Of a stretch of DNA of 64,000 nt, positions 14,610-60,997 are shown in pieces; the first letter of the stretch is position 1, and every line of letters begins with the position of its first letter. This DNA comes from Heteronotia binoei. Taxonomy: Eukaryota. A model generated the notes under the pieces. The model was not told the DNA's origin, searched no databases, and saw only the letters and a program-made list of their open reading frames with translations. The stretch lies in the NCBI RefSeq assembly GCF_032191835.1, contig NC_083237.1:22816001-22880000 (forward strand), written 5' to 3'. The position numbers were made by a program, and so were the translations under genes.

Positions 14610-15738
14610 CGCTCCCTCCTGTTCCTTCTCTGTGTCTTTTTCCTTAGTTAAATCTCTTTTCTGCTCTCATATGAGAACAGGGATTACCTAGGTAAATCCA
14701 TCTCCTTGGGATTAGCTGCTTTTGGCGAGCATCCCCTATCTGTGCTGCCCCATTAGGAGGAACTCTCGTTCTCATCATGCGTCCCGGGGTGCAAATTTCA
14801 TGAAATTTGGATGCCAATAAAATTCAGCCAGTATATGTCACACCCAGGATTGCCTCCCCTTCTGCAATCAACAGTGCAAAGCTTTTTTGCTCACCCAAAC
14901 TGCAAATTTGGCAATCTTGCATTTAATCCCCTTGCCTTCTGGTGCTGATTGGTGAGGGGTGGGGTCTAGGTGCCCAGGTGCACACGTAGACCTATATCTG
15001 AATAGTACAGCGGGAGGGATATTTACCTTGCCCTTCAGTGCTGGCTGGAAGAATATGTGGCTTTCAACATGAGTTTCCCAACCCTGTTTTCATTACCTAT
15101 TCCGAGACTTTTATAAACTACGGAACAGCCTTTTGCAGATCAAAGAGACCCGAAGGTATGCAGTTAATCAGGATTAGAGCGAGTGTTTTTCTTCCAATTC
15201 TCAGTAACACCCCCTTTCCCAGGACTCTTATCATTTCAAAAGAACCAGAGCTCTTAAAAATTTATGGCATCTTGAATTCTAAAAGGGGAATAAATTGCAA
15301 GACTCTCCTCCCACTATGGTTAGTTTAGATGGTCTGAATAAGGTCCTTTCCCTTCTCCATTTTCTTTCTTTCCTTTTTTTTTTAAACTTTCCAACTTGTG
15401 CTCAGTGAGCATACTCACTTATCACTATGTACCATAGAAAGGAATGCATTAAACCTATCTCAACTGAAATGTGATTACAAGCAACTTTTATTGTGTAATT
15501 GATGCGTTTTCAATGCACCTAGAGGCAGTGGCAAGAGTGCTGGAAGCCACTTTGTTTCTGTTTCTGTGTTTACTTGCACGGGTTCAGGTTTTTTCCTTCT
15601 GTAACCATGAGGGCCGGAAACCTCTCAAAGAAAACAGCGTGGTCCTCAAAACCTTGGAAAAGTTAATGACAGAATGGCCAGTTCTGAACTTCAGCACGGT
15701 TGCTCGGACTTCTAAGCTTTTGCTTGGGGCTACAGCCC

Positions 15739-18700
15739 TCATCCCTCACCCACTTCCACCTCCTCGTACATGTGTTCCTCCTCCATCTTCTTAAGCTTCT
15801 TCAGATCTTCCCGATGCTTATCTTTAAACTCCTGGAGAGCTGCCATCTTCTCAGCATCTTCACTGACACCGCGGACCCCTGGCTGGCCGTCCAGAAGTAG
15901 GTATCCCACAGCGTCGGCCAACATTGCTTCAGCTTCGTAACGTAGGGCCTGCAAAGCTAAGGGCCCATAGACGGCAGGGTTGGAATTGTAGCGCTTGCCA
16001 AAGAGGTTGACGGGCCGCAGGAAGTAGTGAGGCAGGTTGCTTTTGGCAAGGGTGTGAATGAGGACCTTCAAGAGATTCTGCACTGAGGACAGCAGCGTCT
16101 CCCAGTGTGCCTTCTGGTAGTAGATTTCACAGCACCACAGCAGGAGAGTCTGCAAAAAAATGGAGAGGAGGGGAGATGTTAGCAGGATCCCACAGTCACC
16201 ACTGGCAGGGGAGGCCCCACCAGTTCCAAATGTCTGAGTGAAGCTTAGGGGGCTTGGTGGGTGTGCATCTATGCCAGTGACTGTGGGGAGGGAACTGGAG
16301 TGGCTGTGGACAACAGGCTCCTAGTTGGGGAGACTGAGAGGAAGGCGATCATATGGTCAGCGATCAAATGGTCAGCTGCTAGCATTAGGATCATAGAGTG
16401 GGAAGGGACCTCCAGGGTCTTATCTGGGAGAACCGGGTTTGATTCCCCACTCCTCCACTTGCACCTGCTGGAATGGCCTTGGGTCAGCCATAGCTCTGGC
16501 AGAGGTTGTCCTTGAAAGGGCAGCTGCTGTGAGAGTCCTCTCCAGCCCCACCCACCTCACAGGGTGTCTGTTGTGGGGGAGGAAGGTAAAGGAGATTGTG
16601 AGCCGCTCTGAGAAGGGTGGGATATAAATCTGCAGTCTTCTTCTTCATCTAGTCCAACCCCCTGCACAATGCAGGGAATTCAGATACCTCCCCCCCCAAC
16701 ACTCCCAGTAACCACAGAAGGTGGCAAAAAAACAAGCAACACCCCCCTCCCAGGATCCCTGGCCAAACTGGCCTGGAGACAGATTGCTGCTGGACCCCAA
16801 AGTGCTGATCGGCATTTCCCTGAGCGTGTAAAGAAAGGGCCATGAGAACTGAGCACCGATGCAACCCTTCCCGCGATCCCTCTCATGATCTGCCTATGTT
16901 CACGGAATCAGCGTTGATGTCAGGTGGTCATCACGCCTCTCTTTAAAAACTTCCAAGGAAAGAGAACCCACCACCTCCTGAGGAAGAGCTGTTCTCCAAG
17001 AGCTGTTTCTCGGACAGCAATGGAGGGGAGGGTGAGAGAAAAAGAGTATGGAATGAATGGGTGGGAGCTGGTGGGGGATACTGCTGGTTGGTCATTTTGA
17101 AAAGTATCGATGGGGGGAGCTGCCTTCTCACATCTGTCAGCAAGCACTGCACTTGCATCAGTCATTTGTCCAACCCCCCCCCCCCCCGCATTTCCATGCT
17201 TTCTTGAGGGCTAGAAACCTGCTTTTGTTTTAGCTGAAAGAGATTACCAGGTTGCCCAGCACGAGAGGTCAAATAAAGGATTGTTTGAACTACCCCCAGC
17301 CCCTGCATGGTAGGCCTGCTCTGCAGATTCACCTTGAGGTGGTAGGAAGACAAGAGTTTGCCGTATTCTGGCTTCCATCTTGTATTGTTGACAAGCTTCA
17401 GAAGCCTCAGAGCTGCCCGTCTCTGTCCCCCGTCAGCATCCACATCCTTTAGAAGTTCAGTCTCAGGGTGGCTGAAGGAGAGCCTAGGCACAGAGTGAAG
17501 AGACGAGTCAGGGAACCTTCTGCATTCTTCCTGGCAGCGCTTCGCTGTTTTGTGTCACTTTAGTTTAATGAGATCTTGATGTTCAGAAGGTAGGCAAGAA
17601 CCCAGTCCCCCTCTTAAGTGAAGGTGGTCCTCCTATGCCTTGAACAGCTTGTCTGCGTGGCATCTCTAAACCAGAGAATAATAGATGCCTGTATAGAAAA
17701 AGACCAGTAGAAAACTGGCAGGGATGGCCAAACTGTGGCTCATATTGTGTGGCTCTCAAAGCCCCCACTACCCCACCGGCTGGCTTGGAGAAGGCTTTTG
17801 TCTCTTCACATCACTTCTCCAAGCCAGCAGCTTGGATAATGCATTTAAAGTGAAAGTTGCTTTCTTTCTCCTCCCCCCTCCTATTTCCTTCCTTCCTTCC
17901 CTCAAACATTTGACATTTATTCTATGTGGCTCTTACGTTAAGCAAGTTTGGCCACCCCTGCTCTATGGTATGCATCTATGATTTCATTGCCTGGGTTAGT
18001 GGCAATATTTTCCTGTCTGTGAAGAGGGTGTGAATTGTGAATGAGGGCTCTTTCCCCTTAGGCATAACCTTTGCATAAGTACCCAGCAGTGTTCATATGA
18101 ATGCTGGGACCGTGGGGGTTATCCCTGCATCAGACAGCCCCCACTCGACTCTGGCAGAATTAAGGGAAAAGGTACCATCACCTTTTAAGTAGATGCACTG
18201 ATGCTGTGCTTGCAATTTAATGTGGAGAGGAGTTAGTTCCTCCAACCCTTGCATTCAGCTTGCAATCAGAATTTAACCTCAGGCACAGATGTTATTGCTC
18301 TTCAGGTCCAAACCATTTGTAATCCAGGCACTCAGCTGCAGCACCTGTCTGTTATCCAGCAAGCTAGGATCCATTCCCCCTGCCCTGCTTTTCTTGTGGC
18401 AAACAGGGTGTCTCAGCTGCTCAGCATCAGAGGGGGTAGCTCAGTCTGCCCCCTGCCCAATGAGTGGCTCCAGACAGGGAGGAAAGGCTGCAGGATTTCT
18501 CATCCAACTAGGAATGGGTGTACCAGGCAGCATTCGGATGAGGGAATTTTACAACAAGCAGGGTTTCAGGTACCAAAATTTGGAAGATAATATAAAATTG
18601 CTTGACTTGTATCTGAATGAAACTTTTATCAAAAGAATCCTTTTAAGTCAGATTTCAAAAGCAAAACATGAAGAACAAAAAAGTCATATTCAAATTCTGT

Positions 18701-21700
18701 AATCATACAAGGCTCTGCTTTCCCTGCCAGATTTTCTTTAGCACCAGCCCCTCATCATCATCATCACCCCCTTCCCAATCCATCTTCCTAAATCAATTAG
18801 TTTGTCATTACCTCCAAAATCCCCCCTTGGCTACCAACTCCGGCCCAACTTCCTGCAGGACAGCCACTTTCCGGAGGAAGCTTCTCTTCTCATTGGTCAG
18901 GTCCCCACCCCACCAATCAGAGAGGTGGGTCAGGTCTTCCCTCAGCCACTGGTTGGAGAGCTTGATGGCCCCCTGGATGGCAGGCACCAGCTTCACGGAC
19001 ACTGCCTCAAGCCCTGCGAGGAGGTACAGCTGGATGGCTGGACTGGCTGGATTCAGGACCTCTAGCTGGGCATTCTCTTTAGGAAATCAGACAAAACATC
19101 ACACCAGTAAGGAGTGGCAAAAGATCCTTAGCTACTGATGGCATTTCTAAGCATTCTTAAGAATACAAGAGAAGCCATGTTGGATCAAGCCAGTGGCCCA
19201 TTCAGTCCAAAACTGTCACACAGTGGCCAAAAAACCCAGGTGCCAACAGGAGGTCCACTTGTGGAGCCAGGACGCTAGAAGCCCTCTCACTGTCTCTCCC
19301 CGCCCCCCAGCTTTTATTTCCTGCTTTTTTGTGGGGGTGGCGACGACCCTGGCAGCACAGTCAAAAGCAGTAAGGGAGGGCCAATGGCTCAAGAGGCAGA
19401 GCATCTGCTTGGGATGCAGAAGGTCCCTGGTTCAATCCCTGCCATCTCCAATTAAGGATTAGTTTGTAGGTGATGGGAAAGGCCTCAGCCTGAGAGCCTG
19501 GAGGGCTGCTGCCAGTCTAAGTAGACAATACTGACCTTGACGGACTAAGCGTGTCATTCCGTATAAGGCAGCTGCATGTATAGTGGCCACATATCAGGCC
19601 CAGCACAAGTGTCAGAGAAAACATCTGCCAGGGTCTAAAAACTAGGCTGAACAGCACCGCCTTACTACTACCTAATGTTGCATCAGGGGACCCGTTTAGG
19701 CAATCTTTTGTGGGGGCTGCCCTCAGCAGTGTGGCACCCCTGTGGTGAGCTTTTTGTTACCTACCTGGGCAACCCTCAGTAGACCCCATCCTCTCTTTCT
19801 GCTTCCACAGCTAATGTGATTGAAAATACCTTTTTAAAACTGGCCACTTCATTATGAGATGATTCTCAACTGCTGGGGGGGGGCGTAAAACTCACGTCTC
19901 ATCCAGGGGACGATGGTGGGCACTTTGGGGGGACGGAGCCTTTGTTGGAAAACTGGATCTAACGAATGACAGAAAACCAGCATCATGTTAGAACTCAAAC
20001 TAATTTGATGTTTAGTGTTGACTGTATAACCCACCTCCCCAGATGAGGAACAGGCATCTGGAGACCTCCTCCAGCCTAAAGGGCTCCCTTTCTGCCCTTC
20101 CCCCAACATAGTTTATTATCCCAGTGTGTGTGTGTGGGAGTGGGGGGGAGATGGAATCTCTTAAAAATTGTTTTACACTTACCATTTTGCAGAGGGTGTG
20201 AGTACGCTGGGAGAGGGTGAAAGAGAGAAACATGAGAAAATGGTTTAAATAATTGGCAGCTGGTGAATTTATCCCCAATCTATTTCCCCCCCCTTGTGCC
20301 TTTAGACCATTATGCATTGGACAGAAATTCAATAGGTGCAGTTTTTCTATGTAGAATAGTAGAAGGCTACTGGATTTTTTTTGACTGCAGTTCAATGGTT
20401 ATAAGCCTGGGAACCCCATTCAAACAAAGGCTGTGATTTGAATATCTCTTGGTGGGAAGTGGGGTCTACCTGGAGCAAAAATATCCCTAAGCATGGGCTT
20501 TCCCTGGAATTGTGCCACAGGGAGAGAGCAGTAACAGGAATTGCAGAGTTTACCCTTCGAGTATTCATTTTAGAAGGATACGCTGCAGTAAGTGCCAAGG
20601 GATTTCTCCGTGGAGGAATGTACCTGGATCCAAAGCAATTTCAACGTAGCGGTGGAAGTTTGTCAGGGTTTGGACGGGGTCTAGGTTGTGGTGTTTGAGG
20701 CTCTCCTGGTAAAGAGAAGGGTGGGGAGTTAGAAAGAGTTCCAAAAGCGAAGGGGGGTGCAGCATACAGACCGGGGAGGGGAGGGCAATGTCTGCGGTGA
20801 CTGCAGTGTCCTGGCCAGGAAAGAGTCTCTCCCAGGCGGGTCACAGGAACTCTGCAGCCTCCCAGCCAGCTATAGGAGGAAGGTTAGATGTCTTGCAGCA
20901 CATCTGCATGGGGTGAGGCCTGGTGCAGCCCACTTAGGCTCAAGCAGGGGTTGCTCCAGCATATTTATTTATGTTATTGACAGTCTTCCCCCCCCCCCCC
21001 CCGCAAAAAAAAGAAATTACGAAATAAAACTCATTCCAGTTGATAGGATAAGGAGACATCTAAAAAATGATTGAATAGAACTAGGATTGTAGAAATCTGA
21101 AAAAAGGTTTCAATGTTAAACAGTGCAAGACTGGCACGACAGAAGCAGAAATTATAATACAATGAGAGCAAGATAAAAACATACAGCAACAGATAATACA
21201 AGGCACGAGTATTGTCCACACAGTCTCATTTTCTCTCCGCTGAAACATCTTCCTGAATCGTTCTGTTATAAGAACAAAGCCAGACTCCAGTGGTACCTTT
21301 AAGACCAAAGGTATAAGCTTCCATGTGCAAGCACACTTCCTCATGCACCTGCACATGAAAGCTTACACCTTGAATAAAACTTCTGTTGGTTTGGTGTAGT
21401 GGTTAAGTGTGCAGACTCTTATCTGGGAGAACCGGGTTAGATTCCCCACACCTCCACTTACAGCTGCTGAAATGGCCTTGGGTCAGCCATAGCTCTGGCA
21501 GAGGTTGTCCTTGAAAGGGCAGCTGCTGTTAGAGCCCTCTCAGCCCCACCCACCTCACAGGGTGCCTGTTGTGGGGGGAGAAGATAAAGGAGATTGTAAG
21601 CCGCTCTGAGTCTCTGATTCAGAGAAAAGGGCGGGGTATAAATCTGCAGTCTTCTTCAAGGTGCCACTGGACTCAAAACTTTGTTCTGCTGCTTCAGACC

Positions 21701-23033
21701 AACACGGCTGCCCACCTGGGTCATTCTGTTACAATGCATCCCTGTTCCTTCATTTAAAAAATGTCCTCCCAAACAGTTATCATTTGCCAAAAGTGGGGGA
21801 GCCTTCCTGGCCGCTTTAGGCAGGCTATTCCAGAGGAGGGGGCACGACAGAGAATGAGCATGTATGGGCACTTGTTGATCTTGCCTGCTGGCAGGGTGGC
21901 ACCTGCAGAAGACCCTGCTCAGGTGAGTGCATTTGTTGTGGTGGGGATAGGAGGATAGGTAGTATGCATCTGTTGTAGTCATACACCGCTGGCTGAGAAA
22001 GGGAAGGGTGTCTCACTTATGTCAAGAGTGACCTGGAATTTGCACCTGGGTCTTTTAAGGGCCTTTTCACACATTGCATAGTGACCCCCCCCCACCCCCA
22101 GCCAGAGTTGCAGTCCCGGCTCCTCACCAAGGGTGCATTTGCAAATGTTTAGTTCTCATACTGTTTATCCTCACTTGTTTGCTCTTTTATATTTTCAATT
22201 TGCACTTAAACTAAACTACATTAGGCATATATGTGTAAAAAAATCGCATCAGCTGCAGGCAGAATGGAAGCAGCTGGTGCATGAAGGAGAAGTGATTCAT
22301 TCCTGAGGGCCTTCTCCAGAGCAATCTCTTGAACAAAACAAAACAGACTTGCAGTAGGTCTCATTCAGTGTGACAAATGCATGCTTATCTCACTGCACCT
22401 ATCATTGATGGGCATCTGCCACTCATTTTCATGTACCAAGATGGACACCATCTGTCCCAGTGTGCACATTTCCCTGTAGCAGTCACCTGGGAAGCCTCTA
22501 ACATACAGGCAAAAGTTCTCAATAGCATTTGGGAAACCCACCTGGTACTCGTCCAGTTCGTCCAAGTCGATGTTGTCATCCTCCAGCCACGCTTTTTGGT
22601 TATGACAGTAGACTTTCACGTGCGCCTCTTCCACAGCCTCCAGATCCACGAGTATTTTGGTGCCCCAGCGGTGTAGGGGCACCCCCTCGTCATGGAACAT
22701 GTAGGTCGGAAGCCTCTGTTCCAGGTGGCTTGGCTGTTTGGCGAGCTCCCCACTTACAAGGGCCAGCTTCGGGTTAAATCTTACTGGGATGAGGAAGTCA
22801 AAATTGGTGGACCCGTCTTCTGGCTGGAGATGAAGTCCTTCCCTGTAGCTGCCCACCGAGATGGGGCTTTGGGGGTACAACCCGGTACTGGACTGGTAAG
22901 CCCATTTCACTATCGAGTCCACCAAGGTCTCCACTGTGGAGAAAGCCTCTTGCACTGTCTGGTCCTTGTCCCCAGAAAGGAAGACGTGGCTGGCATAGAA
23001 CTGCTGCAGACGTCTCTCTGACTCCCCGCTCAT
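15739..23033 (-). CDS. Uncharacterised Mab-21 / cGAS-like (cGLR-fold) nucleotidyltransferase-family protein, 466 aa
   Basis: Exons (minus) 23033-22542, 20705-20624, 19076-18812, 17483-17333, 16149-15739. All are GT-AG, phases 0/1/2/0, 1401 nt open. Mab-21 motifs: VGSYREGL...NFDFLIPV, LDPVQTLTNF, SVKLVPAI, ELVAK...FWRLSFSHPE..LL, DADGGQRRAALRLLK, SSYHLKTLLLWCCE, LPHYFLRPVNLF. In-frame stop upstream of the ATG. PolyA signal (minus) 15487-15492. Confidence 0.88.
16385..16710. mobile_element. CR1 3'-end fragment (minus) interrupted by a 5'-truncated Squam3-like SINE (16416-16645, plus)
   Basis: catagagtgggaagggacctccagggtc | SINE | atctagtccaaccccctgcacaatgcagg rejoins to a contiguous CR1 tail. 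Confidence 0.75.
17719..17960. mobile_element. hAT MITE family A
   Basis: cagggatggccaaactgtggctc ... aagtttggccacccctg. Confidence 0.75.
19372..19580 (+). mobile_element. tRNA(Ala)-derived short SINE
   Basis: tggctcaagaggcagagcatctgcttgggatgcagaaggtccctggttcaatccctgccatctcca head plus a body shared with copies at about 31955, 52015, 55050 and 61850. Confidence 0.75.
21260..21720. mobile_element. Penelope-like element terminus (inverted arrangement) with a nested full-length Squam3-like SINE at 21385-21657
   Basis: gactccagtggtacctttaagacc...aagctt.. / ..gaaagcttacaccttgaataaaacttctgttggt [SINE] aaggtgccactggactc. Family assignment is from recalled reptile PLE ends. Confidence 0.6.
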
Positions 23034-23399
23034 GTTAGTGGTCCCCTGAAAAGCCTTCTTGTTCGGCTTTGTTTTTCTCTGGCTCTGCTTCCTCTCCACT
23101 TTCGCTTTCCCTCTCGGTCAACCCCTCCTCCCCAGGCCGTTTAGTCACTGAGTCTTTCAGCTTTGCCAGCTGCTTGGAAAAACCCCAGCAGGGAAGTTTT
23201 TGCAAAGTGCTCAGCTGGTGACAGGCAAAGGAAAGGCGCGGATTCCAGAAGATCTTCCCTGCTGCTCCTCTGATAAATACCAGGAAGTTAAAAAGGAGAA
23301 TCCAAACAACCCTTCTGGCAGCAATGGGAGCTGTTCCTGGATTTCCTCAGGATCTTTTATGGAAAGGGAAAGCAGTTTAGCCTTCCCTGCCTTTGAGGT

Positions 23400-25347: not shown

Positions 25348-28300
25348 TTATGGTTCCATGTCCCAGTGGAACCCGATGGCATCGACTGAAGACCCTGAAC
25401 GGCCGCTGACAGAACGCAAAACCATGTTTGGGAATGAAGGCTCTGCAGTAAAGAAGGTCCCTGGGCCGAAGCTGGGTCCAAAGGCAAAGATGCGGCCTTG
25501 GTTGGTGCGGAGGGCGAGATATTCCACGTGGCTTCCAAAACGGCCCAAGACCTGGATGATCCCCTCTCCGAGGAAGAGCCGGACGTTGGCTGGGCTGCCC
25601 ACCAGGCCTCCTTCAGTGTTGGACCAGGAGTCTCCATAGCGAACCTGGATGCTAAGTGAGTAAAGGAAAAGATGATGTGATTTCGGGCAGCTTTCTTTTG
25701 GTTCTAGTATCACAATGGAGAGGGATAGGGACAAAACCAGAATTGGTGGGCTTTACTTATCATTGGCTCTGGCTCTTTCTACCGTTGACTAACCCTCTGT
25801 CTGCCCCATCAGTCCTCCTGGGTACCAGTGACCATAACTCCCAACCACCCCTCTTCTGGAGGGTCCTGACATATGCGCCCTCCAAGGTCTTACCTTACAA
25901 TATATCTGTCATTAGATCTTATCCTCAAGCCTGTAATGGGACCCTCCGGCTCATGATCCGATTGGTCAAAATGGCTCCCGGCGTCACTTCCAAATTCTCC
26001 AGAGTAAGAGGCAGAGGTCCTTGCCTGGGCTGGATTCATAGAGGGAAGACTGCCGGTTATTCAGTCATCTGCAGCTCTCTCTCTCTCTCCTGAGTAGACT
26101 CTAACTTAACAGGAGTGTCAAACTAGTTTGTTGTGAGGACCGGATCTGACATAAATGAGACCTTGTTAGGCTGGGCCATGTGTGTACCTGTTTAAGATTA
26201 GGTTGCAGAGATATAAACTTTATAAAGGACACAAACACAATTAAAGGGTTTTTTTTTTAAAAAAAACTTAAAACATGATTAAAACATTAGCACTCATTGG
26301 TCTTAAAGATGCTTTCTTTGTATTTTTCCCATGGGATCCAGGGAACTGGGCAGAGGAAGCTCTGGCTCTTTCCTTCCTTCCCCAGGCGGGGGAGGCGCCT
26401 CAGCCAATAGAAGGAAGAGAAGCTTTGCTCAGTAGGTCTGCTGTGTGATGGAGAGACCCTGGCAAAGCAAACTCTGCCTTACCCCCCCCCCCATCTTCCT
26501 CTGTAGCTCCTGTGCAAGCCTGACAAAGGAAGCTGTGATGGAGAAGGAAGCAAGAGAGAGGGAGAAGGAAGCAGATGACAGCCAGTTGCTCAGGGGCCTG
26601 ATAGGAGCCCTCTGGAGGCCTGATTCGGCCCCTGGGCCAAATGTTTGACACCCCTTCTCTAACACATCCTTTTTCGCCTGCTTTTGCTGCCTGTGACTGG
26701 CCGTATATATATTAATCTTTAAAAGTTGTTGCACAATGACAGAATTGGATCTGTGGCTTCTCTGTAAAGCTGCCTTCCGGAAGTTTCTTTCTCTTGGGCC
26801 CATGTCCAGAGATGTTGTGGGGCACTGCCTAAGGGTACTTGGAGGGCAGGGGGGGATACTTCCTACCGACGTCAATGCTAAACTATGAAAAGTACTTTAA
26901 TAAGCGGTAATTACTTAATCCGGTGCCTGGGAGTGACTGCTGGCATGAACCAGGCCTGCCTGCCAGCCACTTTTTTAATGTCTTGCCATCAGAGGAGCCC
27001 TCCTCCCATAGGGTTGTCAACTCCAGTTTGGGAAATTCCTGGAGATTTGGGGGAGTGAAGCCCACGGAGAGCAGGGTTTGCGGGAAGACCTTAGCAATAT
27101 AAGATAGCATGCAGTCCCCCCTGCAAAGCAGCCATTTTCTCCAGGTGAGCTGACCTCTGATGTCTGCAGATGAATTTAAATTCTAGGAGGAGGAGGAGAG
27201 TTCGATTGATACCCTGCTCTTCACTGGGAGTCTCAGAGCAGCTTACAATCTCCTTCCCTTCCTCTCCCCACAACAGACACCTTTGTGAGGTAGGTGGGGC
27301 TGAGAGAGCTCTGAGAGGACTGTGACTGACTCAAATTCACCCAGCTGACTGCATGTGGAGGAGGAGGGGGGAATCAAACCCGGTTCTCTCAGATTAGAGT
27401 CCACTGCTCTTAACCAAACTGGCTGTAGTTCCACTGGAAGCTGTTGGCAATCATATGAAAGCTGTGCTGTTCACAGTGGCTTCATGTGGATATGCCAGAA
27501 AGGGGCGATATGTATCATAAGATAGAAACCTCTCCTGCTACCAGGGCTTTTTTTGAGCAGGAACACAGTTCTGGCCGGCTTGGTGTCAGGGGGTGTGGCC
27601 TAGTAGTATGCAACTGAGTTCCTGCTGGGCTTTTTCTACAAAAAAGCCCTGTGTGAAACAATGGTAATGTCAGGGGTGTGGCTGAATATGCAAATGAGTT
27701 CCTGCTGGGCTACTTTCTGTAGATCTGAGTTGCTGCAAAAGTCAGTGTGTGTGTGAGGGACAGCAGTATGAATAGGCTGCTGTGGGAGCCAACACACTCC
27801 CAGGGGAAATCTAATGCAGGTGAGGAGTAATTTTAAAAATGCACTGGAAGAAAGGAATGGGAGACAGAACAGAATGTGGTGGTGGCAGCTGCTGCCAAGT
27901 CAATGTCATTTTAATCTGCACATCCAGTCCAATCTCCACTGACCAATCAGAAGTTGCACCAGGCAAAAGCCACCTCTGTCCCCACCCCCTTTCCACTTGG
28001 CAAGAGCCAATAAGGTGTTGGTGAGTGTCATGGCACCCACGGGCACCAAACGGAGGACTAGTGGTATACGACATCCGTCTAGGCTCGAGCCCAGAGCTGC
28101 TGGTGCCCCATTCTTCAACTAGGCCTATTGAATATTTGTATGTTGGCCTCTGGGTATTCCTTACTGGTCTTAGGGGGCCTGAAAGATGTTGCACACTCAT
28201 GCAATCCTTGCTTCGGATGCACACTCCAGTGCTCCAGGTTGCAAACGGTCATGACCTTGCTAGGAGGGTTCTTGTTCCCTTGATGCACATTGCACTTTAT

Positions 28301-32520: not shown

Positions 32521-33240
32521 AAGCTGCTTGAAAGAAGTTCACACACACATGGGAGCAACAGAAGGCTGGAAACTGTGACACATCCCCCTCCACAAGTGGG
32601 TGGAGTTTACGGCCCAATAACTGCCTTCACCAGAAGGATTATTAAAGGCCAATTATCACATGCAACCCTCCGCGACAAAAATACCCCTGTTGAAATTTTG
32701 CAGAGGAGCAGAAATGCCACAGGGTGGCAGCAAACACCATAAAATTGGGCTGTCGCTGCTGCTGAACCTGCCCTTTTCTCTGTTTGTATTTACTATTTAC
32801 AGTTAGCCTAAAGTAGGCTTAATCTGGCAATGGCAAATCTGTGCCATCTTTTACAATCGCTCCTGTGGATTCCTGCAGCCATTTTCTTCCAGCTGCCTGT
32901 AATAACAAGCTGAATTTCAACAGGCAAAACTTCATCATGCAATATCTATATGTTAGGCTCGTGAACTTCCAGGTACGGGCTGGAGATCTCCCGGGATTTC
33001 AACTGATCTCCAGATGACAGAGATCAGTTCCCCTGGGGGGAAAATGCCGTGACTCTTTTAATCTGCTAAAAAACATTTCCATGACTACATACTAACTCAC
33101 TGCCCACTTTCTCTATATTTAGGATTGCTTGCCATTCCATCCTATTGTCTGATGAAGTCTGCTTCTTCTAGCACACAAAAGCTTACATTCTGAATAAAAC
33201 GTTGTTCTTAAAGGTGAACTTGACTCTTGCTTTGTTGTAC

Positions 33241-35040
33241 TCCTTCGGCCCACTCAGTCTGGAGGAAGTCGACAGGATCCTTGCAGCTGTGCACCCTACG
33301 ACCTGTAGGTTAGATCCGTGCCCGTCTTGGCTTATAAAGGCTAGCCAAACGTGGCTGCGTGAACCACTACAGGACATTATCAACAGGTCCCTGATTGAAG
33401 GGATCTTTCCCACACCTCTTAAAGAGGCAGTGGTCTGTCCCCTCTTTAAAAAACCATCAGCAGACCCGGCCATATTGGCGAACTATCGACCGGTGTCAAA
33501 CCTTCCCTTTCTGGGCAAGGTCATAGAGCGGGCGGTAGCGATTCAGCTGCAAGGATTCCTGGAGGACACTTCCGCACTGGATCCATTCCAGTCCGGCTTC
33601 CGGCCAGGTCACGGGACGGAGACAGTTCTGGTCGCCCTCATAGATGACCTTATGCGACATCTGGACCATGGCGGTTCCGCAGTGCTGTTGTTATTAGATC
33701 TGTCAGCCGCTTTTGACACGGTTGACCATCAGCTACTGACTAGCCGCCTTGCCGATGTGGGGATTCAGGGACTGGCCTTACAGTGGCTGACCTCCTTTCT
33801 CCAAGATCGGGGACAAAGGGTGGTGATAGGGGAGGAAGCATCCCAGAGGCACTCTCTTAGCTGTGGGGTGCCGCAGGGAGCGGTCCTATCCCCGATGCTA
33901 TTTAATATCTATATGCGCCCCCTTGCCCAGATTGTCAGGAGGTACGGACTGGGTTGCCATCAATATGCGGATGACACCCAGCTCTATCTATTGATGGGTA
34001 GCCAGTCTGACTGTACCCTGGAAAATCTAGACCTGGCGTTACAAGCCGTGGCCTTTTGGCTCAGACTGAATCGGCTGAAATTGAATCCGACGAAGACGGA
34101 GATTCTCTACCTGGGTCGGGGCGGTCCGGGGAGAGAGATCCAGCTGCCGGCCCTTGACGGGGTACCATTGATACCGGTCCCTAAGGTCAAGAGCTTAGGC
34201 GTGCTCCTTGAGTCCTCCCTTACAATGGAGGCTCAGGTGGCAGCCACTGTTAGATCTGCCTTCTTTCATCTTCGGCAAGCGCGGCAGCTGGCCCCTTACC
34301 TGGAGCGCAACGACTTAGCGAGGGTAATCCATGCTACGGTCACCTCAAGAATAGATCACTGTAATGCTCTCTACATGGGGCTACCCTTGACGCTAACCCG
34401 GAGACTACAGCTAGTGCAGAACGCTGCGGCACGGCTGCTAATGGGGCTGCCACGACGGGAGCACATTCAGCCAATGCTGAGAGAGCTGCACTGGTTGCCT
34501 GTTGTATTCCGAGTTCGCTTCAAGGTGTTGGTATTAACCTTTAAAGCCCTCTATGGTCAGGAACCTGCCTATCTATGGGACCGCCTTTCCCCATATATCC
34601 CCCAGAGAGCACTGCGATCAGGGACAAAAAATCTGTTGTCTGCCCCTGGCCCAAAAGAAGCCAGGCTATGTGTAACGAGATCCAGGGCTTTTTCGGTGGC
34701 AGCGCCAGAACTTTGGAACACCCTCCCAGAAGCTATAAGGGCCCTGCGGGATTTGTCTGCGTTCCGCAGGGCCTGTAAGACCGAACTGTTTAAACAGGCT
34801 TTTGTGGTCTAATTGAAAAAGGGCTGCCACCGGACACCGGTGGGTCTGATCATAGTTAAGAAGTCAATACCGCCTATACTGGATTGAAATAGCGCTATAG
34901 AATGGTTTTAAAGTTGATATGTAAATTATGGTTTTATATGTTTTATTGGATTGATTGTTTTGTGGTGGTGTGGGCCGCCCTGAGTCCGCTTGCGGAGAGG
35001 GCGGGATATAAATGAAAAGTAATAAATAAAAAATAAATAA
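33241..35040 (+). mobile_element. L2-clade LINE, 5'-truncated, uninterrupted RT ORF (33202-34812)
   Basis: RT motifs NYRPVSNLPFLGK, QSGFRPGHGTET, LDLSAAFDTVDH, GVPQGAVLSP, YADD. No stops or frameshifts over about 1.6 kb; 3'UTR and (TAAA)n tail. Confidence 0.92.
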
Positions 35041-57534: not shown

Positions 57535-59423
57535 TGATGGCTGTCTGATGAGGCTTTACAAATAGCTGAGGAAAGAAGGAAAGTGAAAGGCAAAGGTGAA
57601 AAGGAAAAATTCAAACAACTGAATGCAGATTTTCCAGAGAACAGCAAGGAGAGATGAGGCCTTCCTGAAGGAACAATGCAAAGCAATAGAGGAAAATAAT
57701 AGAATGGGAAGGACAAGAGATCACTTCAAGAAAACTGGAGAAATCAAGGGAACGTTTCGTGCAAAGATGGCCATGATAAAGGACAAAAACAGTAGGGACC
57801 TAACAGAAGCAGAAGAGATCAGGAAGAGGTGGCAAGAATACACAGAAGAATTATACAAGAAGAATCTCAGTGTCCTGGAAACCATGACAGCGAAATCGAT
57901 GACCTTGAGCCAGCATCCTGGAGTGTGAAGTCAAATGGTCCTTAGAAAGCATTACTAACAACAAAGTCAGCAGAGATGACAGTATCCCAGTTGAGCTATT
58001 CAAAGTCCTAAAAGATGATGCTGTTAAAGTGATGCACACATTATGTCAACAAATTTGGAAAACGCAACAGTGGCCAAAGGATTGGAAAAGATCAGTTTAT
58101 ATTCCAATCCCAAAGAAGGGTAATGCCAAGGTATGTTCAAACTATCGCACCACTGCACTCATTTCACATGCCAGCAAAATCATGTTAAAGATCCTACAAG
58201 CTAGGCTTCAGCAGTATGTAGATCGGGAACTACCAGAAGTTGAAGCTGGGTTTCGGAGAGGTAGAGGAACAAGAGATCAAACTGGCAACATTCGCTGGAT
58301 TATGGAGAAAGCACGGGAGTATCAGAAAAATGTCTGTTTCTGTTTCATTGACTATGCTAAAGCCATTGATTGTGTGGATCACAATAAACTGTGGCAAGTC
58401 CTTAAAGAAATGGGAGTACCAGACCACCTCACATGTCTCCTGAAAAACCTGTATAAGAAGCAACTGTCAGAACAGCATATGGAACAACTGATTGGTTTAG
58501 AATAGGAAAAGAAGTTCGACGAGGATGTATATTGTCACCCTGCGTATTTAATTTATATGCAGAGTATATCATGTGGAATGCTGGCCTGGATGAAGCAGAA
58601 GCCGGAATTAAGATTGCTGGGAAAAATATCAACAACCTCAGATATGCAGATGATACCACTCTAATGGCAGGAAGTGAGGAGGACCTAAAGAACCTCTTGT
58701 TGAGGGTGAAAGAGGAGAGCGCAAGAGTAGGCTTGAAACTCAACATCAAAAAACTAAGATAATAGCATCTGGCTCCATCACACCTTGGCAAATAGAAGGG
58801 GAAGACATGGAAGCAGTGACAGACTTCACTTTTCTGGGATCCAAGATCACTGCAGATGGTGTCTGTAGCCATGAAATAGAAAATACATTTGTTCCTTGGG
58901 AGGACAGCTATGGCGAACCTGAGCAGTATAATAAAAAGTAGAGACCTCACGCTGCCAAAAAAAGTCCGTATAGTCAAAGCGATGGTATTTCCAGTAGTAA
59001 TGTATGGCTGTGAGAGCTGGACCATAAACAAGGCTGAGCTCAGAAGAATAGATGCTTTTGAGCTGCGGTGCTGGAGAAGAATCTTGAGAGTCCCTTGGAC
59101 TGCAAGAAGGTCAAATCAATCACTCCTAAGGGAAATCAACCCAGACTGTTCCCTGGAAAATCAGATGCTGAAGCTGAAGCTCAAATACTTTGGTCACCAA
59201 ATGAGAAGGGAGAACTCCCTGGAGAAGATCCTGATGCTAGGAAAGACAGAAGGCAAAAGAAGAAGGGGACAGCAAAAGATGAGATGGCTGGACAGCGTTA
59301 CTGATGTAACAAACACGAATTTGAGCAGACTTTGGAGGATGGTGGAAGACAGGAGGGCCTGGCGTGACTTTGTCCATGTGGTAGCAAAGAATTGGACTCG
59401 ACTGTGTGACTGAACAACAACAA
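57535..59423 (+). mobile_element. BovB (RTE) LINE, 5'-truncated, frameshifted
   Basis: ORF pieces 57623-57928, 58029-58505, 58532-58762 and 58889-59413: CQQIWKTQQWPKDWKRSVYIPIPKKGNAK, IDYAKAIDCVDHNKLW, LRYADDTTLMA; tail ctgaacaacaac. Confidence 0.93.
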
Positions 59424-60370: not shown

Positions 60371-60475
60371 TACTTGTTTTAAAAACTGTTGCTTATTCTC
60401 TCCTTTGGCAGTTCCTGGAACCCCTTTAATTTCAAATAACTCTTCCTCATACAATTGTCTTGTCAACATTATCCA

Positions 60476-60609
60476 NNNNNNNNNNNNNNNNNNNNNNNNN
60501 NNNNNNNNNNNNNNNNNNNNNNNNNNNNNNNNNNNNNNNNNNNNNNNNNNNNNNNNNNNNNNNNNNNNNNNNNNNNNNNNNNNNNNNNNNNNNNNNNNNN
60601 NNNNNNNNN
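60476..60609. other. Assembly gap (N run)
   Basis: Run of n characters. Confidence 0.99.
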
Positions 60610-60997
60610 TCCTGTGTTTCTCTTCTTTATATATTGATTCTCAGTTTGCCTCCCCAGGTCTACTTTTGTTTTTCAAAGAGTTTACCACAGTGCCTGGCTC
60701 CTGTTTCGGCCCACCTGGCAGCTGGCAGTCTGCTGGCAGCTCAGAGAGATGGCTCGGTGTTCCTATGCTATGCTGAAGGCCGAGGAATCTAGTTGCACCC
60801 AAGCTGAAGTTAATTGGGAGTGAGGACACAGAGCCAAATTGGATTGCAAGGTGAGATGTTGCCAACGAGTTCCTTGAATGTTTGTTTCCCAAATAACACA
60901 CATCTTGCTTTGAAAGTGGAGCATTTGCAAGGAGGGTGTGTGCTATTTCGGCCCAGTCAAAACGTGGAGCTTCAGCCTCAGCCTGCTGTCCAGGCAG

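Follow-up and report, generated by a model that had tools for sequence, protein, structure and literature searches.

A Mab-21/cGAS-like gene beside THOC6 in the gecko Heteronotia binoei and the state of its catalytic residues in squamates and turtles

Gene model, transcript and upstream element

A 64,000-nucleotide stretch of the genome of the gecko Heteronotia binoei (contig NC_083237.1, positions 22,816,001 to 22,880,000; hereafter the window, numbered from its first letter) carries on its minus strand a gene of the Mab-21/cGAS superfamily. A first-pass annotation, made from the letters of the window, had placed this gene at 15739-23033, and the span proved exact, with the ATG at 23033 and the stop codon at 15739-15741. 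The structure proposed within it (5 exons, 1401 nt, 466 amino acids) had to be revised: homology to the Lacerta and Paroedura orthologues, together with an assembled RNA contig, gives 7 coding exons, 1488 nt and 495 amino acids, with GT-AG at every exon junction. Two small exons of 24 and 63 nt, both of a kind easy to miss in annotation, had been overlooked, and the earlier frame had stayed open because the omitted exons total 87 nt and are in frame. Exon borders were taken from tblastn with the Lacerta agilis orthologue, from alignment to the Paroedura picta orthologue (P0031) and from the RNA contig. The features of the gene, in the order of its reading, are as follows.

23097-23111, minus strand (that of the gene): element resembling an interferon-stimulated response element or interferon regulatory factor element (ISRE/IRF-E-like), GGGAAAGCGAAAGTG, a consensus match whose GAAANNGAAA core lies 76 nt upstream of the ATG
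22542-23033, minus strand: coding exon 1, 492 nt, from the ATG at 23033 to the donor CAG/GTGGGT; tblastn with Lacerta and alignment to Paroedura P0031
20624-20705, minus strand: coding exon 2, 82 nt; RNA contig (run X1) on 20624-20711, tblastn E 2e-7
20183-20206, minus strand: coding exon 3, a 24-nt micro-exon encoding AYSHPLQN; acceptor CCCAG/, donor /GTAAGT
19896-19958, minus strand: coding exon 4, 63 nt; RNA contig on 19896-19958, tblastn
18812-19076, minus strand: coding exon 5, 265 nt; RNA contig on 18811-19076, tblastn E 3e-39
17333-17483, minus strand: coding exon 6, 151 nt; RNA contig on 17333-17482, tblastn E 3e-21; motifs WRLSFS and DVDADGGQRR
15739-16149, minus strand: coding exon 7, 411 nt including the stop codon at 15739-15741; Pfam PF20266, RNA contig on 15552-16149
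15487-15738, minus strand: 3' untranslated region; AATAAA at 15487-15492, 247 nt past the stop codon, RNA contig reaching 15552

Exon 1 encodes the N-terminal helix and the first strands of the nucleotidyltransferase (NTase) core, including G61-S62, N77 and D79. Exon 5 carries an invariant LSDWW motif and the strand on which K249 occupies the place of the third catalytic acid. The Mab-21_C domain comes from exon 7, as does a helical tail that is charged and conserved.

Splicing of the gene was seen directly in run X1, where one 1686-nt contig at a depth of 14.7 matches the exon borders of the seven-exon model and supplies the spliced junctions that the first-pass annotation had named as a check. 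The contig aligns to the window in the order 15552-16149, 17333-17482, 18811-19076, 19896-19958, 24 unaligned letters and 20624-20711. The unaligned letters, exactly 24 between exons 2 and 4, support micro-exon 3, in whose place the orthologues read EYTHPRQN. The last six aligned letters, TACCAG, are the end of exon 1 and stand directly before exon 2, which sets the exon-1 donor at 22542. A competing donor, TTG/GTACAT at 22437 (giving 522-530 amino acids), was rejected, since the orthologues and the RNA contig both end exon 1 at 22542. At the other end of the gene, raw reads cover 15500-15699 and are nearly absent from 15300-15499, the depth fading below about 15500, and the polyadenylation signal claimed earlier is present as the AATAAA listed above.

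Four RNA runs contain 0.20, 0.19, 0.17 and 0.06 of the words sampled from the 7.4-kb span of the gene, of which the exons make up about one fifth. In the raw-read runs X5 and X6, which carry the same species label, exon depths were about 1-3 at 6% of each run read, so expression there is low. The introns contain repeats resembling short interspersed elements (16300-16700, 17700-18100, 19100-19700 and 21390-21650) at which the summed contig RNA depth reaches about 400,000; this depth, and the many spurious joints that swamp the joint table for the gene, arise because genomic copies elsewhere are transcribed.

The GAAANNGAAA core of the upstream element recurs in the same orientation at -76 in Paroedura, -72 in Lacerta and -88 in the turtle Natator, and a variant with one mismatch lies at -75 in Crotalus. 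The core occurs 12 times in the whole window, counting both strands. The ISRE/IRF-E consensus is known from interferon-stimulated genes, and its conservation at this place suggests that expression of the gene may be regulated by interferon or interferon regulatory factors (IRFs), pointing in turn to a possible role in innate immunity.

Fold and relation to other Mab-21 genes

The assignment to the Mab-21/cGAS superfamily in the first-pass annotation was borne out by domain searches. With a cut-off of 24.1 bits, Pfam PF20266 (Mab-21_C; HhH/H2TH-like) matches exon 7 of the window at 39.3 bits (E 7.7e-10) and the Lacerta orthologue at 64.4 bits. The Mab-21 NTase domain, PF03281 (cut-off 24.1), is found in the full-length orthologues P0003 and P0012 with 27.7 and 40.1 bits, respectively; when the exons of the window were scanned singly, the family was seen in the last exon only and the PF03281 cut-off was not reached. 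Against PDB sequences, a profile of 21 family members found cGAS-like receptor (cGLR) 1 (8gjy) at 4e-17, cGAS at about 1e-13, MAB21L1 at 4e-12, MB21D2 at 1e-7 and MiD51 at 7e-6. The structural check proposed at the first pass gave the same answer. The Paroedura orthologue, which shares 82% identity with the window protein, was modelled with AlphaFold; the model has a predicted local distance difference test score (pLDDT) of 76.9 and a predicted template modelling score (pTM) of 0.78, and Foldseek aligned it with cGAS structures over its full length (E about 1e-13, template modelling score 0.70-0.74 by target). Among Swiss-Prot models it matched cGLRs, cGAS, MAB21L3, MAB21L4, MB21D2 and MAB21L2, all at 15-20% identity, and the best of these matches was Stylophora cGLR1. 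The gecko protein is thus predicted to have the bilobal Mab-21 fold of cGAS. It is soluble and acidic (pI, the isoelectric point, 5.8), and its 495 residues contain no membrane-spanning hydrophobic segment, no signal peptide and no zinc-thumb pattern H(X5)CC(X6)C, as had been noted on the shorter reading.

Compared with its relatives, the gecko protein resembles cGAS and the cGLRs from end to end in its bilobal Mab-21/NTase fold; it also has their G-S loop, their middle catalytic Asp and the motifs WRLSFS, SYHxKT and LxHYF. cGAS is interferon-inducible, and both genes have a promoter-proximal ISRE-like element. The gecko protein differs in being only about 17% identical, in having no zinc thumb, in being acidic rather than basic, in carrying N and K in place of the first and third acids and in its extra conserved charged helical C-terminal tail. 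MAB21L3 belongs to the same superfamily and has the D-x-DGG-x-RR motif after WRLSF, but it is a separate gene and clade and reaches 16-18% identity in structural alignment. In the MAB21L3 of the gecko, the segment aligned to the catalytic E-x-D reads QFLVTV, with no acidic residue.

MAB21L1 and MAB21L2, the best paralogue matches of the family profile in the gecko genome, are Mab-21 proteins with an incomplete catalytic site and no known NTase activity (PMC4897736). They differ from the reptile gene in being single-exon, near-invariant developmental genes, with an identity of 31-34% over the C-terminal domain only. The mitochondrial proteins MiD51 and MiD49 (MIEF1 and MIEF2) are distant relatives, matched in the PDB profile search over the C-terminal domain only (E 7e-6), and are membrane-anchored, unlike the reptile protein, in which no transmembrane segment occurs. 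In both, the Mab-21 fold serves as an adaptor, the mode that we propose below for the reptile protein: ADP is bound but not turned over by MiD51, and MiD49 does not bind nucleotides at all. MAB21L4 (C2orf54) resembles the gecko protein in being multi-exon, soluble, poorly characterised and of similar length, and it was a structural match at E 4e-11; one snake orthologue of the family has been named automatically as 'C2orf54-like'. The identity to MAB21L4 is 16-17%, however, no better than to other subfamilies.

The gecko genome holds at least 13 Mab-21 loci, among them, by sequence, MAB21L1, MAB21L2, MIEF1, MIEF2, TMEM102, cGAS and genes like ITPRIP. These names were for the most part assigned by reading the open frames; that of MAB21L3 was put to a test, in which the locus on contig C4 proved 81% identical to the Paroedura 'protein mab-21-like 3' and is the true MAB21L3. 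The family profile finds one copy in the genome, the next-best loci being MAB21L2 (6e-12), MAB21L1 (3e-10) and one MAB21L3 exon (7e-6). The new family coexists with MAB21L3 in Lacerta, Gekko, Candoia, Pelodiscus and Mauremys, and in at least six reptile species overall.

In a maximum-likelihood tree, built without MAB21L4, MB21D2 and full-length cGAS, the family forms one clade (100/99) outside the MAB21L3 clade (100/100), which holds frogs, mammals, birds, turtles and squamates. The tree gives the family no resolved position among MAB21L1/2, MIEF and MAB21L3. In the structural comparison, identity to MAB21L4 (human and mouse) and MB21D2 was 16-17%. Three identities were rejected on this evidence: that of a cGAS orthologue, since the zinc thumb is absent and cGAS has its own locus on contig C1; that of MAB21L1/2, which have their own loci on contigs C9 and C3; and that of MAB21L3, given the separate clades, the true MAB21L3 on contig C4 and the presence of both genes in several reptiles. 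The distinctness from cGAS, MAB21L1/2 and MAB21L3 claimed from the sequence therefore holds through separate loci in the same genome, and the tree does not place the gene as a plain MAB21L3 orthologue, the outcome named beforehand as speaking against it. ESM Atlas searches returned superfamily-level names only and gave no label to paralogue exons from contigs C4 and C17.

Three further gecko loci were seen in passing. A second cGAS-like gene (G000:C17:12731846-12736764, L035:1444-1854 and L005:1477-1953; Pfam Mab-21 2e-6) groups with gecko cGAS in the tree (99/98); one of its exons keeps the third catalytic Asp (ISIDLIPAL), and its last exon ends in a hydrophobic stretch resembling a transmembrane segment. 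Two more Mab-21 loci lie on contig C20, at 34764569-34764829 (L008) and 19401086-19401490 (L034). One of them is a TMEM102-like paralogue, the 100/100 sister of the true TMEM102 on contig C8, and the other is a 473-amino-acid open frame that begins with a hydrophobic segment near its N-terminus and matches Mab-21 weakly.

Catalytic residues, selection and distribution

In a profile alignment to mouse cGAS, the family G-S falls on the G-S of cGAS, the family x-F-D falls on its E-F-D, and the lysine of the family V-S-V-K-L-V-P (K249) falls on the Asp in ISVDIILA. The same catalytic columns hold E-V-D and D in an invertebrate protein resembling cGLRs. The three positions read as follows (first / second / third acid).

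Window gecko, by residue alignment: N77 / D79 / K249
All 21 squamates: D, G or N / D / K, N or R
Cryptodire turtles (Natator, Dermochelys, Gopherus, a Mauremys-like sequence and Chrysemys): D / D / D
Pelusios copy A: T / D / Q
Pelusios copy B: T / D / N

The pattern of the metal-binding pair, [DE]h[DE]h, is thus broken in the window (N77-F-D79), is present as D-[FY]-D in the cryptodire copies and reads T-[FY]-D in Pelusios. The third acid, h[DE]h, equivalent to D319 of human cGAS, is absent from 21 of 21 squamates and kept in most turtle copies. By contrast, the hG[GS] loop is there as G61-S62, invariant in all family members, and so is the equivalent of D79. Of the full ordered set of motifs that the gene had been credited with, the GS motif and the second acid therefore stand, and the first and third acids do not. 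The two Pelusios database entries, P0005 and P0018 (1038 and 1177 amino acids), look like two adjacent genes fused in one model, with catalytic acids lost in both halves.

Nucleotidyltransferases of the polymerase-beta type need all three acids, and loss of the third abolishes catalysis; mutation of the equivalent residue in cGAS (D319) or OAS1 likewise abolishes activity. As judged from these residues, the squamate protein presumably makes no nucleotide product any more. The earlier suggestion of a cytosolic 'sensor or scaffold' divides accordingly: since the triad is degenerate in the gecko and in every squamate examined, an enzymatic sensor of the cGAS type is unlikely, and a scaffold is plausible.

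Loss of these acids has not been accompanied by loss of constraint. The ratio of nonsynonymous to synonymous substitution rates (dN/dS, Nei-Gojobori) between the window and Paroedura is 0.20 (bootstrap 0.14-0.27; dS 0.53), and it is 0.14-0.27 for other pairs, in which dS is partly saturated. The reading frame is intact and the exon structure conserved in about 20 squamate species from geckos to snakes, with conservation among squamates peaking in the C-lobe (mean column 0.80-0.82) and around K249. The gene is kept under purifying selection, as the first reading of its open frame had suggested.

To define the distribution of the family we searched exon 1 exhaustively with HMMER against 1.84 billion representatives, which gave 14 matches; all those whose source was named were squamate or turtle. 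Two word-based searches, one starting from the full-length Lacerta protein and one from the family profile, brought in many more squamate and turtle members but no vertebrate protein from another subfamily; two distant matches (P0044 and P0049), for which the sources give no organism, look by sequence like invertebrate Mab-21 proteins. An AlphaFold DB cluster search returned one match at 33% identity, its organism not shown, and otherwise none above 23%. No mammal, bird, crocodilian, amphibian or fish member appeared in the exhaustive HMMER search, the two word-based searches or the two AlphaFold DB searches. The claim that human has no counterpart is in keeping with this absence of mammalian members, but the wider idea of a vertebrate subfamily lost in mammals goes beyond the data: the family can be followed back no further than the ancestor that squamates and turtles share.

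The locus itself is conserved. The window aligns collinearly, at 69-88% nucleotide identity, to the locus in Paroedura, where the order is a jacalin-lectin gene, the Mab-21 gene, THOC6 (convergent) and HCFC1R1 (HPIP). In the window the Mab-21 gene stands tail-to-tail with THOC6, which was confirmed against PDB 7apk. The order jacalin gene, Mab-21 gene and convergent WD40/THOC6 gene is common to Paroedura, Lacerta and Crotalus. In Pelodiscus (L026:418-18039), two tandem family copies are followed by a WD40/THOC6-like gene; in the Natator and Dermochelys records no neighbouring gene was found within 10 kb. Upstream of the Mab-21 gene in the window lies a jacalin-like lectin gene (ZG16-like; 25351-25734, minus strand, extending to about 30200; Pfam Jacalin 2.9e-7).

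Within the family, the tree joins turtle copy A to the squamates, with turtle copy B as the sister of both (98/95). With a root outside the family, this would mean that the duplication predates the split between squamates and turtles and that squamates retain the A-type only. The squamate gene tree largely recovers the expected species clades, with the window grouping among geckos.

In public annotation, members of the family appear as 'uncharacterized LOC', 'mab-21-like 3' or 'C2orf54-like', and the last two labels are wrong or unsupported for these genes. Published lists of vertebrate Mab-21/cGAS relatives comprise cGAS, MB21D2, MAB21L1-4, MiD49/51 and the ITPRIP group (PMC10327000). No paper describing a Mab-21 or cGLR paralogue of reptiles came up in literature searches. 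TMEM102 also belongs among the vertebrate relatives. The gene described here adds a new and lineage-restricted member to a superfamily already known; it does not represent a new kind of system.

Interpretation and remaining features of the window

We consider it probable, with some reserve, that the squamate gene encodes a non-catalytic, possibly interferon-regulated Mab-21 pseudoenzyme that arose from an enzyme-like ancestor. The gecko gene would be the single-copy orthologue of an uncharacterised family with the Mab-21/cGAS fold, in which squamates appear to have retained the fold, the G-S loop, D79 and the charged C-terminal helix while the metal site was lost. Like MAB21L1 and MiD49/MiD51, the squamate protein would then most likely bind a nucleotide, another ligand or a partner protein. 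The ancestor, and perhaps the living turtle copies too, may have been active cGAS-like enzymes; on their residues, the turtle copies with full triads may be active still. Interferon or IRF control of the gene is possible, and with it a role in innate immunity. One orthologous locus thus offers a natural contrast between a full triad in turtles and its loss in squamates with conservation and expression. Because of this contrast it can be tested whether vertebrates have enzymatic cGLRs besides cGAS and what role the Mab-21 fold takes on after loss of catalysis.

Several observations weigh against this account. The mapping of the active site comes from a sequence-profile alignment, the loss of catalysis is read from residue identity alone, and the invariant G-S and D79 could still allow some unusual chemistry. 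The pI of 5.8 speaks against nucleic-acid binding like that of cGAS and points to no ligand. The ISRE-like element matches a consensus and is conserved between species, but it is absent at that place from the Dermochelys and Pelodiscus records and inexact in Crotalus. Both raw-read runs showed low expression. That birds, crocodilians, tuatara, mammals, amphibians and fish lack the family was judged on annotated or predicted proteins, not on genomes. Non-canonical catalysis, a misnamed MAB21L3 or MAB21L4 and a decaying relic all seem less likely to us than a conserved pseudoenzyme.

A bolder extension of the pseudoenzyme account, which we offer as doubtful speculation, takes the family as an unrecognised vertebrate cGLR lineage, distinct from cGAS, that predates the squamate-turtle split. 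The tandem D-D-D copies of cryptodires would be interferon-inducible sensors that make second messengers, and one of the two is basic, with a pI of about 9. The single squamate copy would have turned, more than 200 million years ago, into a conserved pseudoenzyme with a regulatory part in innate immune signalling, perhaps that of a decoy or an adaptor within a pathway of the cGAS/STING type.

It is also conceivable, but in our view unlikely, that the gecko protein is an active cGAS-like receptor with a non-canonical site in which, for example, K249 replaces one metal ion. The invariance of the G-S loop and D79 in all members, a fold nearest to cGAS and cGLR structures and an ISRE-like promoter element, which suits an immune sensor, would all fit such a receptor. 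The need for three acids is established knowledge for NTases of this type, however, and a third position occupied by K, N or R throughout the 21 squamates beside a first that drifts between D, G and N looks like an abandoned metal site; the acidic pI and the absent zinc thumb are likewise a poor fit to DNA binding of the cGAS type.

Less probable still is that the gene is a diverged or relocated reptile orthologue of MAB21L3 or MAB21L4. NCBI and UniProt pipelines do name some members 'protein mab-21-like 3' or 'C2orf54-like', both proteins are among the top Swiss-Prot structural matches, and Pfam scans revealed no separate MAB21L4 locus in the gecko genome. For MAB21L3 this reading is already refuted by the locus on contig C4, by the five other reptiles that have both genes and by the position of the family outside the MAB21L3 clade. 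For MAB21L4 it meets an identity of 16-17% to the human and mouse proteins, not above that to cGAS or MB21D2. Human MAB21L4 lies at 2q37.3 and not beside THOC6.

That the gene is a functionless, decaying, transcribed relic of a dead enzyme is very improbable: the lost catalytic residues, the shallow read depth in two RNA runs and the want of any archosaur or mammal member found would agree with it, but the frame and exon structure have survived in some 20 squamate species, dN/dS is 0.14-0.27, the mRNA is correctly spliced down to the 24-nt micro-exon, and non-catalytic parts such as the C-lobe (0.80-0.82 among squamates) are highly conserved.

Elsewhere in the window, a fragment of a long interspersed element (LINE) lies at 33202-34812 on the plus strand, with a 536-amino-acid open frame and a reverse-transcriptase domain (RVT_1, 1.8e-36). 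A run of N at about 60470-60680 (285 N in the window) marks an assembly gap or masked sequence. A LINE-like set of open frames occupies 58029-59413 on the plus strand; one of them was scanned against Pfam and gave no match.

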